The notes beneath the pieces were generated by a model. The model saw only the letters and a list, made by a program, of their open reading frames with translations. It was not told where the DNA came from and ran no database searches. From Macrostomum lignano (lineage: Eukaryota): a stretch of DNA of 64,000 nt. Shown here in pieces: positions 7,614-19,639 of the stretch. Made by a program: the position numbers and the translations under genes. The DNA is taken from contig NIVC01000378.1 in NCBI GenBank assembly GCA_002269645.1, positions 1 to 64,000 of the forward strand, written 5' to 3'. Position 1 is the stretch's first letter. Every line of letters begins with the position of its first letter.

Positions 7614-8772
7614 GTGGCCGGGTGCTCTCGCCAAGAGTTTCGCCGGTGCTCCCGGCCCCCAGTTATTTTTCCACCCCGGCACTATAATACATGTAGACTA
7701 GATCACGTACCACACGTCATGGAAGTAACGCGTATACATGTACAGTACATGTATGTACGTATTATAAAGGACGACGTCCTTGTGTACGTACCACATGTAA
7801 CTTCTAGTGGCCTTTGAGGTCTAGGTCCATGACCTGCATGTGCACATGGTAGTATGTTATACACGTACATAGTAAATGATTAGTTGGCAGTAATTAAAAA
7901 ATGGCTACGTAAATGTAAATAATATGTGGTACTCGTATACGTAATCTACTACGCGCGGTACATGCAGTATACTACAATTTTACATTGGGTCTGTACCGGT
8001 AAAATTCACTTGTTTCAAAATAGTCACCACGTCCCAAGTTGTATTTTACAGATGTATCATATCATTTGATATATGCGCATTCATAAGTATTTAATTGCAG
8101 CTATTATATTTGTCGTATTCGATCAACACAAATTATAATTATAATGATATGATGAAAGTTGCAAATAACTATCCAAATAAATATTATCATCACAATAACA
8201 TAGAGCTTTTTATAGCGATGTTAGGCAACCTCACAAAGCTTCTGTTTCGAATTAGATTCTTACGCTGAAACAAGCTTTTACAGAAGTAACTCAGGCTTTC
8301 ATCTGCAACTTCGTCACAATGTTGATATCATTTTTTATGATGTCCCTCTTTAAAATGATAAAATCGTTGCTTTTTTAGTACTTAAAATAGATAGCTTTAT
8401 AAAGTTTTACCTCATATTTTGATTGTTTTGTTATATCAAGGTAATATCGTTCCTTTATTAAAATTTACGTTTTCTCTGAATTCATGACAATTCGCTTGCA
8501 TCACTGCTTTACAGCCTATACTTCTGGAAGTTGCGCGTTCTGCTGGCACCGCCAACAACACGCTGCCTTCCGACGTCGATAAAACATAGAACCTAACTTA
8601 TTGTCTTTAATAACCACCTGATTCGACTAAGATTAGAGATACGCTTAGCTAGGCGAAACGTGTTAGCTGTTAGGCCTAGTCTAAACTTTATTTTAAAGCT
8701 TCTACGTGTAGGCCTTCTAAAAAAACGTAACTTTTAGAACATAGGAGTAGGCCTTCTTTCACTTAGGTCTCA

Positions 8773-16715: not shown

Positions 16716-19639
16716 ATGACATTCACCGTAGTAGATCTCAAAGTGACGCTTCTGTCACTAATGGCAACGACAGTTCTAGCAGTCTGCTTAGGCCCAGTGT
16801 ACGCACTGCACAGGATTCGCAACTCAGAATTGGCATCTAGATTTGCTCGCGGTCGCGTTGAAGAACGTCGCAGGCGTCGACTCCGCGAACTGTGGGTGTC
16901 GCGTATGTCGGTATTCGCCGCTGGCGTGTTTGTGTCGGTCGGCCTGATGGACCTGTTCCCCGACGCCTACGGCGATCTCAGCGAAGCGGCTGAAGTTTAT
17001 CGTTGGCGAATGCGCCGGTTTCCGCTGTCTTATTTTTTAATGCTGTGCGGCTTCTTCATGGTGCTAGTGCTGGAGCAGCTTGTGCTCAGCTGCCGAGAGC
17101 GTCAGATGTTGAGCCAGTCGGGTCGGTCCCAGAAACGGAGAGATAAGCGAATGAAGGAAAGAGAACCTGCAGCTGTCAACAACTCGGTAGAAACCGACGC
17201 CTTGCTTGGTCAGCCAATCAGAACAGGCCGCGCTAATGTACCGGCCGCTCTGATTGGCTACGGCACTTCGCATATGATAGCTAATAGTAGTAGTCAATCA
17301 ATTTCAGTTGCTAGGCGAGCCAGGTCTCTGTCGGACATCGCCGCGTCCTGGCGTCAGGCCGGGGAGTTCGACGAATCCCCATCGATTGTTGGCATCCGGG
17401 CTGAGCCCGTGCTGCCGCCGCCGCCCGCCCCCTGGAGTGCCGGGGCCGGGGCAGCGCGTCGGTATGGCGGAGTCGATGATGACAATGATGACGTCATCAT
17501 AGCGACGAGTCAGGCCGAGGCGGCGGCAGCCGTGGCCGAGATTGAAGCCGCTCTGTCCGAGGAGGACACAGCGTCGAGTATGGCGCACGAGTGCGACCAC
17601 CGAAGTCATAGGGATCATAATAATTTTGTTAGCGGCAGTCAGGTGAGATCATATTGCCTGTGTGTCAGTAGGGAATTTCTCAGATTGCCTGTGTGTCAGT
17701 GGGGAATTTCTCAGATTGCCTGTGTGTCAGTAGGGAATTTCTCAGATTGCCTGTGTGTCAGTGGGGAATTTCTCAGATTGCCTGTGTGTCAGTGGGGAAT
17801 TTCTCAGACTACCTGTGTATCAGTGGGAAATTTTTCAGACTACCTGTGTTAAAGGGGAATTTCTCAGACTGCCTGTGTGTCAGGTAATTTCTCAGACTGC
17901 CTGTGTTAAAGGGGAATTTCTCAGACTGCCTGTGTTAAAGGGGAATTTCTCAGACTGCCTGTGTTAAAGGGGAATTTCTCAGACTGCCTGTGTTAAAGGG
18001 GAATTTCTCACGTTGCCAAGACCACTAAAGTAGTAAATCGGCCCAGAAGCCAAAGCGACTCATGAGGGCGGCGGTTGATCGAGGTCCGAAAAATGGCTCA
18101 AAAGGCTCTAATAGAGTAAGGAGTCTTTCGGGTTTCCATCGCGTGTTGAAAATTTATGCTTTTTCACTGGCGTATTCTGTGAATCGCCATCATTTGTGAA
18201 TTGGACTGTAAAGTAGCCAGCCTGAACGACTTTCAATATCTAGAAAGAAATCGCTTTTTAACACTTCAACTACTTTTACTTTGACCTGTGGAGCTTTGAA
18301 TGTTGTAGCATTTTTGTCCTGTTACAAATGGGAATTTGTGGCTGTTTTCAAAGTAAATACGAGTCTTCTCGTGTGTCAATGTGTTTTGAAATAATGAGTC
18401 TCAATCTGCCTTTAAATGAGTCTCACTGTGTCTCAAAATGAGTCTTAATCTGCCTTCAAATCAGTCTCAATGTTTCTTCATATGAGTCTCACTGTGTCTT
18501 GAAATGAGTCTCACTGTGTCTTGAAATGAGTCTCACTATGCATCAAAATGAGTCTCACTATGCATCGAAATGATTCTCACTGTGTCTCAAAATGAGTCTC
18601 ACTGTGTCTCAAAATGATTCTCACTGTGTCTCAAAATGATTCTCACTGTGTCTCAAAATGAGTCTCACTGTGTCTTGAAATGATTCTCACTGTGTCTCTA
18701 AATGAGTCTCACTGTGTCTCTAAATGAGTCTCACTGTGTCTCGAAATGATTCTCACTGTGTCTCTAAATGAGTCTCACTGTGTCTCGAAATGAGTCTCAC
18801 TGTGTCTCTAAATGATTCTCACTGTGTCTCTAAATGAGTCTCACTGTGTCTCGAAATGAGTCTCACTGTGTCTCGAAATGAGTCTCACTGTGTCTCAAAA
18901 TGAGTCTCACTGTGTCTCTAAATGAGTCTCACTGTGTCTCGAAATGAGTCTCACTGTGTCTCGAAATGAGTCTCACTGTGTCTCGAAATGAGTCTCACTG
19001 TGTCTCGAAATGAGTCTCACTGTGTCTCGAAATGAGTCTCACTGTGTCTCGAAATGAGTCTCACTGTGTCTCGAAATGAGTCTCACTGTGTCTCGAAATA
19101 GGTCGTGTCCTTAAACAACGAGTCTCAATATCTCCAAGACTGCTCATTATTCTACCTGTAATTATAACCGCTGACAGATTCGCACGGTACTACTTGTGGC
19201 CGCAATGTCCGTGCACTCCCTATTCGAGGGTCTGTCACTCGGCCTCATACCAGCCGTAGGCAATGCGGCCAGTTTATTTGCTGCCATACTACTGCACAAG
19301 CTAGTAGTAGCATTCAGCATTGGAATGCAGCTGAGCTCATCTGGCCTGTCAGTTTGTACAGTGATCGCCTGCGGCTGCGTGTTTGCTCTGATGAGCCCGG
19401 CTGGCTGTGGCCTGGGCATGCTGGTGATTGAGTTTGTCAATCACTCGGCTGCAAAGCTGGTTAGCGGCGTGCTTCAATCCATCACATCCGGCACGTTTCT
19501 CTATGTTGCATTCTTTGAAGTGTTGCCGCACGAGTTCAACACTGGCCGGGACCGGCAGGGCAAACTGCTGGCTCTGGTGCTGGGTTTTGCTGCCGTTTGC
19601 ATCTACGTGTTTATCGACTCGCTGAAGGATGCCGACTAG
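16716..19639 (+). CDS. ZIP (SLC39, ZIP1/2/3-type) zinc transporter; exons 16716-17642 and 19178-19639
   Basis: Exon 1 has SVFAAGVFVSVGLMDLFPD, FPLSYFLMLCGFFMVLVLEQLV and a His-rich loop end (HECDHRSHRDH). A phase-0 intron runs from CAG|GTGAGA to ctgacAG|ATT. Exon 2 has the TM4/TM5 metal motifs HSLFEGLSLG and LHKLVVAFSIG plus GTFLYVAFFEVLPHE. Confidence 0.93.
17652..18010. repeat. 29-31-bp minisatellite at the 5' end of the ZIP intron
   Basis: Unit TTGCCTGTGTGTCAGTGGGGAATTTCTCAGA starts about 10 nt after the donor. Confidence 0.95.
18395..19098. repeat. 22-bp minisatellite (GAAATGAGTCTCACTGTGTCTC)n in the ZIP intron
   Basis: About 30 copies, becoming more homogeneous towards the 3' end. Confidence 0.96.

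Follow-up and report, generated by a model that had tools for sequence, protein, structure and literature searches.

We analysed a 64,000-nt stretch of Macrostomum lignano DNA (positions 1-64000 of scaffold NIVC01000378.1, Mlig_3_7 assembly; hereafter the window), in which the genes for FMC1, RBX1 and a ZIP zinc transporter follow one another in this order on the + strand (Table 1). The window was compared with two further full copies of the locus, L001 and L003, and gene order, strand and both spacer arrays are kept in all three, with no other annotated gene between. Neither the FMC1-RBX1 nor the RBX1-ZIP spacer had an Rfam or a tRNA match. The original prediction, whose guess at the organism was right, had read the three genes as one operon resolved by spliced-leader (SL) trans-splicing, and all sequence features that it had claimed are present, at most 1-2 nt from where it had put them. 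Each of the three + strand genes does have an acceptor-like AG before its ATG (8765-66, 14851-52 and 16713-14), and the spacers, given as 2.1 and 1.5 kb and mostly satellite, measure 2119 and 1531 nt with arrays of 1611 and 1093 nt. Unique sequence between array end and acceptor, put at about 130 and 95 nt, came to 123 nt (GATA array to RBX1) and 92 nt (30-mer array to the site proposed for ZIP). The further claim that promoters or upstream UTR exons would hardly fit overlooked the unique sequence on the other side of the arrays, 375 nt before the first and 343 nt before the second. All that is said here about RNA derives from gene names and from the CDS coordinates in GenBank.

Table 1. Features of the FMC1-RBX1-ZIP locus, in window positions; a slash marks a splice junction.
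Feature	Position	Strand	Remarks
FMC1 upstream conserved block	8534-8589	+	Near-invariant among window, L001 and L003; flanks indel-rich
13-mer TTCCGACGTCGAT, first copy	8568-8580	+	In FMC1 upstream block
Candidate FMC1 SL acceptor, ttctttcacttAG/gtctcaATG	8765-8766	+	AG kept in all three copies
FMC1 exon 1, codons 1-38	8773-8886	+	ORF, ATG 8773, G/GTATGT donor; in L001 and L003; missing from GenBank
FMC1 exon 2	12074-12223	+	Internal AG 12085-86, annotated 5' ends in window and L001
FMC1 exon 3, to stop codon	12646-12741	+	
(GATA)n array, FMC1-RBX1 spacer	13117-14727	+	TRF, 402 copies, 1611 nt
Tandem RBX1 acceptors, CTGCAG/ (exon start 14853) and CACAG/ (exon start 14859)	14847-14858	+	Identical in three copies
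RBX1 (RING-box 1), single coding exon, 107 aa	14861-15184	+	Pfam zf-rbx1 2.8e-25
Consensus 5' splice site G/GTAAGT	15332-15337	+	148 nt after RBX1 stop; sole GTRAG donor in either spacer
30-mer satellite array, RBX1-ZIP spacer	15528-16620	+	TRF, 36 copies, 1093 nt
13-mer TTCCGACGTCGAT, second copy	16633-16645	+	Just upstream of annotated ZIP 5' ends; identical in three copies
ZIP 5'-end zone: TTTCAG/ (exon start 16651), CCCCCAG/, CTTAG/	16645-16671	+	Annotated 5' ends, three copies
ZIP acceptor of the original prediction, tatcAG/cATG	16713-16714	+	Read through by all annotated transcripts
ZIP zinc transporter	16716-19639	+	Exons 16716-17642 and 19178-19639; ATG 16716; Pfam Zip 8.2e-57

Gene models

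The GenBank models of FMC1 are truncated, and we recovered the missing exon 1 at 8773-8886. The N-terminus that it encodes aligns with those of proteins named 'FMC1 homolog', and homology to the FMC1/LYR-motif family covers the whole protein, its N-terminal LYR-like helix included, with a Pfam match to Complex1_LYR_2 (3.6e-6, residues 4-111) and 141 matches in a full HMMER scan, the best of them named 'protein FMC1 homolog'. For FMC1, the word-indexed homolog database gave an M. lignano fragment only, and a search against solved structures a single spurious designed-repeat match; an exact-protein look-up of the window RBX1 and of full-length FMC1 found no match. The protein clusters that we checked for SL-bearing transcript contigs held GenBank and UniRef entries only, none of them transcript-derived. 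RBX1 is 83-96% identical to RBX1 of animals, fungi and plants among the matches listed, and its homolog search returned distant species only. ZIP is 99% identical to BOX15_Mlig021309g2, and its intron contains two arrays, one of a 31-mer and one of a 22-mer; the search with its protein returned M. lignano matches plus two distant ZIPs only. We dropped the idea that RBX1 and ZIP are functionally linked through zinc, as it is speculation that nothing supports.

A canonical AATAAA lies downstream of FMC1 exon 3 at 12844-12849, and five AATAAA/ATTAAA hexamers are found in variant units of the (GATA)n array, while neither hexamer occurs in canonical form between RBX1 and the 30-mer array. Both the lack of such a signal after RBX1 and the presence of a few hexamers within the arrays count against the operon reading. 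Conservation between the copies proved uninformative as a test of functional spacers, as divergence is patchy, with intron 2 being 99.1% identical and the exons 96%.

Transcript starts at FMC1 and RBX1

Among all ATGs that the window has outside the arrays, 23% are preceded within 10 nt by a pyrimidine-rich AG, and the chance that three of three genes have one is about 0.012, which makes the three AGs before the three ATGs suggestive, not decisive. The M. lignano SL-acceptor motif is [T/C]TNCAG (PMC8629364). It is found within 10 nt upstream of 3.6% of ATGs, and RBX1 (CTGCAG) is the only one of the three genes that qualifies, the sites at ZIP (TATCAG) and FMC1 (ACTTAG) falling outside it. Annotated 5' ends lie on an AG boundary in seven of nine cases (three genes in three copies) against a background of 24% (P ~0.001), a pattern that would follow if TBONE, the annotation pipeline, had placed its cuts at SL peaks. 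The window, L001 and L002 contain no SL sequence (3' end …CAATTTATTGCATG) or SL RNA gene.

At RBX1, the acceptor proposed at 14851-52 agrees with the annotation, as the GenBank transcript model begins directly after CTGCAG (/14853). The annotated CDS in the window starts at 14855, so the transcript 5' end is at 14853-55; in L001 and L003 the annotated 5' end falls on the G of CACAG. CTGCAG fits the published motif, and the exon starts directly after it. Three ATGs occur in the 133 nt that precede the RBX1 start codon, which suits an outron rather than a 5'UTR. It counts against SL addition that an SL AUG joined at the RBX1 acceptors would create an out-of-frame ORF of 24-26 codons spanning the RBX1 start.

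Gene names connect RBX1 with FMC1. Annotation prefixes were assigned per cluster of transcriptional units, and the clusters were then cut into genes. In L001, FMC1 is Mlig019878g2, while Mlig019878g1 is the RBX1 protein common to L001 and L003. That two unrelated genes carry one prefix (Mlig019878) implies that some assembled transcript covered both FMC1 and RBX1, which is consistent with one pre-mRNA cut at an SL site. ZIP and RBX1 belong to different transcriptional-unit clusters in all copies. The prefix that FMC1 and RBX1 have in common in L001 favours the proposal of a single pre-mRNA for three genes, and the ZIP prefix, which differs from that of RBX1 in every copy, speaks against it; the support is indirect, and it exists for the FMC1-RBX1 link only. 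As a general caveat, transcript assemblers can fuse neighbouring genes that do not form a true operon.

The conserved block at 8534-8589 is probably the FMC1 promoter or TSS region. Downstream of it, the candidate FMC1 acceptor (ACTTAG) departs from [T/C]TNCAG, although an SL AUG joined there (8767) would be in frame with FMC1 (MVS-MAAIK). The 286 nt upstream of the FMC1 ATG lack any ATG, in the 1.1% tail of inter-ATG gaps; this points to an ordinary, retained 5'UTR and argues against a need for the acceptor at 8765-66. Within exon 2, SL addition at 12074 would place the AUG in frame (82 aa), and addition at 12087 would give a 3-codon ORF only.

The start of the ZIP transcript

None of the three annotated ZIP copies has its 5' end at the predicted acceptor (16713-14); their starts lie about 45-65 nt further upstream. 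The annotated proteins begin with SNRPSLAGK in L003, PSLAGK in L001 and AGKPV in the window, and the 5' ends are ragged over 21 nt, two of the three on AG boundaries, at TTTCAG or CTTAG, and that of L001 not at an AG. TTTCAG (16645-50), 65 nt upstream of the ZIP ATG, fits the SL-acceptor motif and is TTTCTG in L001. The leader from 16651 to 16715 has no ATG. Addition of the SL at 16715 would produce AUGCAUG, opening a 42-codon ORF that overlaps the ZIP start in another frame. For these reasons, the full operon in its original form, with one promoter upstream of 8760 and the SL added at 8767, 14853/14859 and 16715, seems to us very unlikely, as TATCAG and ACTTAG are also off the motif and the ATG-free FMC1 leader points to a retained 5'UTR. 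It has in its favour the annotated 5' end of RBX1, the in-frame SL AUG at 8767 and the fact that a trans-spliced gene comes first in most published M. lignano operons.

The explanation that we regard as best, and as about equally apt to be right or wrong as a whole, places a promoter 5' of FMC1, with read-through of the arrays and SL addition at RBX1 and probably also at ZIP. Transcription would most likely start at a promoter at ~8534-8600; the FMC1 mRNA would be cleaved downstream of the AATAAA at 12844, with the polymerase continuing through the (GATA)n array, and the RBX1 mRNA would be capped by SL trans-splicing at its tandem acceptors (CTGCAG/14853 and CACAG/14859). The ZIP mRNA would begin about 45-65 nt upstream of its ATG instead of at 16715, probably by SL addition at TTTCAG/16651 or CTTAG/16672. 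If the SL is added at either of these, the 30-mer array is part of the ZIP outron or of intercistronic RNA. This RNA may or may not be continuous with that of RBX1. The gene models, the arrays, the annotated 5' ends and the common prefix are observed here, while the single promoter, transcription through the arrays and the addition of an SL are what we infer.

The 13-mer TTCCGACGTCGAT hints at a separate ZIP promoter. It occurs only twice in the window, once just before FMC1 and once just before ZIP, each time on the + strand, and its 12-mer core, with one mismatch allowed, is observed twice against 0.09 expected by chance. It is therefore possible, though rather doubtful, that only FMC1 and RBX1 form an operon, or no genes at all, with ZIP an independent gene, conventionally capped from a promoter within the ~30-50 nt that follow the 30-mer array, where the 13-mer would be its mark, and with the ragged 5' ends being a dispersed TSS cluster. 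Invariance of the ZIP copy of the 13-mer in three loci would agree with this, as would the 21-nt spread of 5' ends with that of L001 off an AG, the ATG-free leader, and the absence of ZIP from the transcriptional-unit cluster of RBX1. However, two of the three ZIP 5' ends are on an AG, one of them on a perfect TTTCAG motif, a factor site 5-25 nt from the TSS would be unusually near, the 13-mer is altered to CCAACGTCGAC in the L001 copy of FMC1, and operon spacers rich in repeats are known to interrupt transcriptional units. A hybrid of the two arrangements strikes us as improbable: FMC1 and RBX1 would form an operon across the GATA array, and ZIP would depend, alone or additionally, on an internal promoter abutting the 30-mer satellite and defined by TTCCGACGTCGAT (GACGTC core, previously undescribed), so that FMC1 and ZIP would be co-regulated by a common factor, not by co-transcription.

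The consensus donor at 15332 could make the ZIP acceptor a cis acceptor. More generally, the acceptors might be cis acceptors of non-coding 5' exons upstream of the arrays, which would then be 5'UTR introns; at ZIP, an intron would run from 15332 to TTTCAG/ at 16650, in an RNA started either at a TSS within 15185-15331 or at RBX1, the latter being spliced and bicistronic. We consider this quite improbable. The donor is the sole GTRAG in either spacer, and both donor (GATAAGT) and acceptor (TTTCTG) are lost in L001 but intact in the window and L003. In the 95 nt preceding ZIP there are just two differences, and the one in the acceptor is the only substitution. FMC1 exon 1 is a precedent for a real upstream exon missed by the same annotation, and in parasitic flatworms cis- and trans-splicing often use common acceptor sites. 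Yet a junction 15331/16651 would have put the RBX1 3' region and ZIP in a single transcriptional unit, whereas the prefixes of the two genes differ in all copies, and RBX1 would be left unexplained, as no GTRAG donor is present in the 375 nt that precede the GATA array. The donor itself may be fortuitous, as GGTAAGT occurs 6 times in 47 kb, giving a chance of ~4% for one in 343 nt.

Comparison with known operons

Operons with repeat-inflated spacers have already been published for M. lignano, from the same assembly (Ustyantsev & Berezikov 2021, PMC8629364), and the general idea is not new. In that study, the genes of an operon are adjacent and in the same orientation, with no opposite-strand gene between them, a repeat-adjusted distance below 1000 bp and an SL-bearing downstream gene, and the repeat-adjusted distances peak near 100 bp under the threshold of 1 kb. 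In gene arrangement and spacing, our cluster, an ordinary locus, fits that operational definition of operons inflated by repeats and resolved by the SL, and its downstream genes are candidate SL carriers. The window, L001 and L003 each have three consecutive + strand genes; stop-to-ATG distances minus the arrays are 508 nt (FMC1-RBX1) and 438 nt (RBX1-ZIP), upper bounds that still include 3'UTRs, and a [T/C]TNCAG motif ends at the exon start of RBX1 (CTGCAG/14853) and of ZIP (TTTCAG/16651). As in the published operons (PMC8629364; annotation of Wudarski et al. 2017, PMC5730564), conserved housekeeping genes are adjacent on one strand, tandem repeats dominate the spacers with a non-repeat distance well below 1 kb, the annotated RBX1 5' end is on [T/C]TNCAG, and FMC1 and RBX1 have one prefix in one copy. 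However, the non-repeat remainder here is at most about 370-500 nt against a mode of ~100 bp, ZIP was never assembled together with RBX1, and SL status is here read from annotated 5' ends. The FMC1-RBX1-ZIP locus is not named in the M. lignano operon and annotation papers examined, and its Mlig gene IDs had no match in the paper texts or supplements searched.

Similar to the SL2-type operons of C. elegans, the genes are co-oriented, the upstream gene has a 3'-end signal, and an acceptor lies just upstream of the downstream ATG. In contrast, the only SL of M. lignano is 35 nt long and ends in AUG, without a specialised SL2 beside it, the SL AUG would create upstream ORFs here, and the raw spacers are 1.5-2.1 kb instead of ~100 nt. 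The locus can also be compared with monocistronic SL genes with short outrons, which make up ~60% of the SL-spliced genes of M. lignano; the closeness of acceptor and ATG, only a few nt apart, and the ATGs in the RBX1 outron are like these, but a promoter would have to fit between array and acceptor, in 123 nt (RBX1) or ~30 nt (ZIP), or else within the satellite. The common prefix of FMC1 and RBX1 in L001 argues for read-through rather than a monocistronic SL gene.

If confirmed, the operon would be one more case among roughly ten thousand M. lignano genes in repeat-inflated operons, adding little beyond annotation, and kilobase-scale satellites would be tolerated in intercistronic or outron RNA. 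Of practical use are the recovered FMC1 exon 1 and the ZIP 5' end about 45-65 nt upstream of its ATG, which is relevant to cloning of these promoters for M. lignano transgenesis. The locus is also a convenient illustration, as the arrays recur in four assembly copies but differ widely in length: in the full copies, the GATA array at the same position measures 1611 nt in the window, 562 nt in L003 and 208 nt, its shortest, in L001, and the 30-mer array, 1093 nt in the window, is down to 853 nt in L003 and to about 590 nt in L001.

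Gene models and repeat-rich spacers

The original prediction described FMC1, RBX1 and ZIP as three co-oriented genes of one trans-spliced operon with satellite-inflated spacers. The genes themselves are real, with gene models and Pfam domains for all three on one strand, and TRF confirmed that satellite arrays occupy much of each spacer. A HMMER scan with FMC1 returned 141 matches, the top ones named “protein FMC1 homolog”, and the peptide of its first exon aligns to the N-termini of proteins of that name. The ZIP protein (16716-19639) has 99% identity to M. lignano BOX15_Mlig021309g2, and an identical copy is present as P0141, the ZIP protein copy on scaffold NIVC01000378.1 of assembly GCA_002269645.1; the window corresponds to positions 1-64000 of this scaffold.

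Features of the FMC1-RBX1-ZIP region
Feature	Position	Strand	Evidence or location	Annotated CDS start	Annotated transcript 5' end
FMC1	ATG 8773; exons 8773-8886, 12074-12223, 12646-12741	+	Pfam Complex1_LYR_2	12086	12084-86
RBX1	single exon 14861-15184	+	Pfam	14855	14853-55
ZIP	exons 16716-17642, 19178-19639	+	Pfam	16671	16669-71
(GATA)n array	13117-14727		TRF; FMC1-RBX1 spacer		
30-mer array	15528-16620		TRF; RBX1-ZIP spacer		
TTCCGACGTCGAT, copy 1	8568-8580	+	inside conserved block upstream of FMC1		
TTCCGACGTCGAT, copy 2	16633-16645	+	just before annotated ZIP 5' ends		

The spacers span 2119 nt (FMC1-RBX1) and 1531 nt (RBX1-ZIP), and 123 and 92 nt of unique sequence separate the array ends from the predicted acceptors of RBX1 and ZIP, respectively. 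These distances had been read as offering hardly any space for a promoter or UTR exons, a view that leaves out of account a further 375 and 343 nt of unique sequence ahead of the arrays. The GATA array measures 1611 nt in the window, 562 nt in L003 (NIVC01002986.1) and 208 nt, its shortest, in L001 (NIVC01003752.1), the latter two being paralogous or allelic loci. Identity between copies varies from stretch to stretch and offers no means of picking out constrained elements in the spacers. Repeats are widespread here: micro- and minisatellites make up 16.9 kb of the window (about 26%), in at least 21 arrays that are unrelated to one another and have units of 4-47 nt. The length of orthologous arrays varies several-fold among the assembly copies (the window, L001, L003 and L005). 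A fourth copy, NIVC01004819.1, breaks 855 nt past FMC1, around the point at which the other copies, the window included, have the onset of the GATA array.

Trans-spliced operons with satellite-inflated spacers are already known from this genome. Ustyantsev and Berezikov (2021) studied the same assembly, Mlig_3_7, and reported a single 35-nt spliced leader (SL), CGGTCTCTTACTGCGAAGACTCAATTTATTGCATG, a repeat-subtracted distance distribution with its main peak at ~100 bp, and a repeat-adjusted threshold of 1 kb for calling operons (PMC8629364). As repeat-inflated operons have been published for both the species and the assembly, this locus would be an unremarkable instance. Rfam and tRNA searches of the window gave no matches, and no SL RNA gene turned up in the window, in L001 or in L002, the last being identical in sequence to window 6671-29639.

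Acceptor motifs and annotated 5' ends

AG dinucleotides are present at all three predicted acceptors (FMC1, 8765-66; RBX1, 14851-52; ZIP, 16713-14). Taking all window ATGs outside arrays as background, 23% are preceded within 10 nt by a pyrimidine-rich AG, so that three genes out of three (chance about 0.012) is only mildly unusual. The published SL-acceptor motif, [T/C]TNCAG, lies that close to 3.6% of ATGs and, among the three genes, only to that of RBX1 (CTGCAG); for ZIP, a perfect match (TTTCAG) sits 65 nt ahead of the ATG.

The GenBank CDSs of the three genes are 5'-partial: they extend to the 5' end of the transcript model and no in-frame stop lies directly ahead of them, and the CDS start therefore fixes the annotated 5' end within 3 nt. 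For RBX1 this end includes base 14853, which directly follows CTGCAG, in agreement with the predicted acceptor, while the L001 and L003 models use the second of two tandem acceptors and begin on the G of CACAG. Across copies, seven of nine annotated 5' ends fall on an AG boundary, compared with 24% in the background (binomial P about 0.001, the nine ends not being independent). TBONE, which used SL and poly(A) peaks to divide transcriptional units into genes (PMC5730564), would produce such an excess by cutting at SL peaks, although cis acceptors would look identical. ORFs in this annotation came from TransDecoder (PMC5730564).

For FMC1, every copy has a GenBank model of 76-80 aa that is truncated at the 5' side: it begins within exon 2 and lacks the unannotated exon 1, which encodes an LYR-like N-terminus. 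Two of these models begin at an internal acceptor, CAACAAG (12087; site 12084-12089). If an SL were joined at 12074, the cis acceptor of exon 2, its AUG would be in frame and give a product of 82 aa. The 286 nt upstream of the FMC1 ATG are free of ATG, and gaps this long make up just 1.1% of those between ATGs in the window; this suggests that FMC1 retains a conventional 5'UTR, with a candidate start within or close to the conserved block 8534-8589. FMC1 would also be the first gene, as there is no annotated gene at 2086-12085 and no long plus-strand ORF was found close upstream.

Possible linkage of FMC1 and RBX1

The published annotation grouped assembled transcriptional units at 95% identity and gave the members of each cluster a common name prefix (Wudarski et al. 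2017, PMC5730564). In L001 the FMC1 fragment is BOX15_Mlig019878g2, and the RBX1 protein common to L001 and L003 is BOX15_Mlig019878g1. The two genes are unrelated in sequence, so the shared prefix implies that one assembled unit contained both, which we infer from the methods text, where it is not stated as such. L001, where the prefix is shared, also has the shortest GATA array, in line with a published observation that long repeats break up units. The prefixes of ZIP (Mlig021309, Mlig024189) are different ones in all copies. Counting against the original prediction, RBX1 has no canonical poly(A) hexamer ahead of the 30-mer array, and a few AATAAA/ATTAAA occur within variant array units. We consider it probable that RBX1 is SL trans-spliced at one or both predicted acceptors, and slightly favor its co-transcription with FMC1 through the GATA array. 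ORF alteration by SL-derived AUGs is a known issue (PMC9851317); at the RBX1 acceptors the SL AUG would open a 24-26-codon out-of-frame ORF covering the RBX1 start, so that translation would need leaky scanning, a further point against the prediction.

The start of ZIP

All annotated models run through the acceptor predicted for ZIP. The window model begins on the G of CTTAG, 45 nt further upstream, and the L003 model directly after TTTCAG (window 16651); in L001, TTTCTG replaces this motif and the model begins ~10 nt farther downstream, where there is no AG boundary. An SL joined at 16713-14 would create AUGCAUG, with an out-of-frame ORF of 42 codons running over the ZIP start, and one joined at 16651 a harmless 2-codon ORF. 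Trans-splicing at these upstream acceptors has, in our judgment, an even chance of being correct.

A cis intron removing the 30-mer array is another possibility. A consensus donor, G|GTAAGT (15332-15337), lies 148 nt past the RBX1 stop and is the only GTRAG in either spacer; the window and L003 retain both donor and TTTCAG, and L001 has lost both (GATAAGT at 9076-9081 and TTTCTG at 9985-9990 of L001), a pattern that would suit such an intron. ZIP may instead have its own promoter, which would follow if an element shared with FMC1 is promoter-proximal: the 13-mer TTCCGACGTCGAT, with palindromic core CGACGTCG, has exactly two copies in the 64 kb, each on the plus strand, where 0.09 occurrences of its 12-mer core would be expected by chance with one mismatch allowed. 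Membership of ZIP in the same pre-mRNA appears doubtful. For the operon as a whole, the original prediction finds partial support: the RBX1 5' end and the FMC1/RBX1 prefix speak for it and the ZIP acceptor and prefixes against it, and an operon exactly as first described is highly improbable.

Within the part of ZIP exon 1 that encodes the loop, two canonical CCAAT boxes (GCCAATCAG) form an inverted pair at 17213-17221 (+) and 17250-17258 (-), 28 nt apart; the window holds no others, and two or more were seen in 9 of 100 shuffles. Farther downstream, a long single-exon ORF at 25819-26937 (+; 372 aa) has no Pfam match and is absent from the gene listing of the region, and another at 51326-53236 (-; 636 aa) likewise has no Pfam match. 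Exons of a MUN-domain (Munc13/CAPS-like) gene lie at 36079-37634 (-; Pfam MUN, 5e-75 and 5e-31), and large 42-mer and 20-mer arrays occupy non-coding sequence beside them (31507-34227 and 38306-38735).
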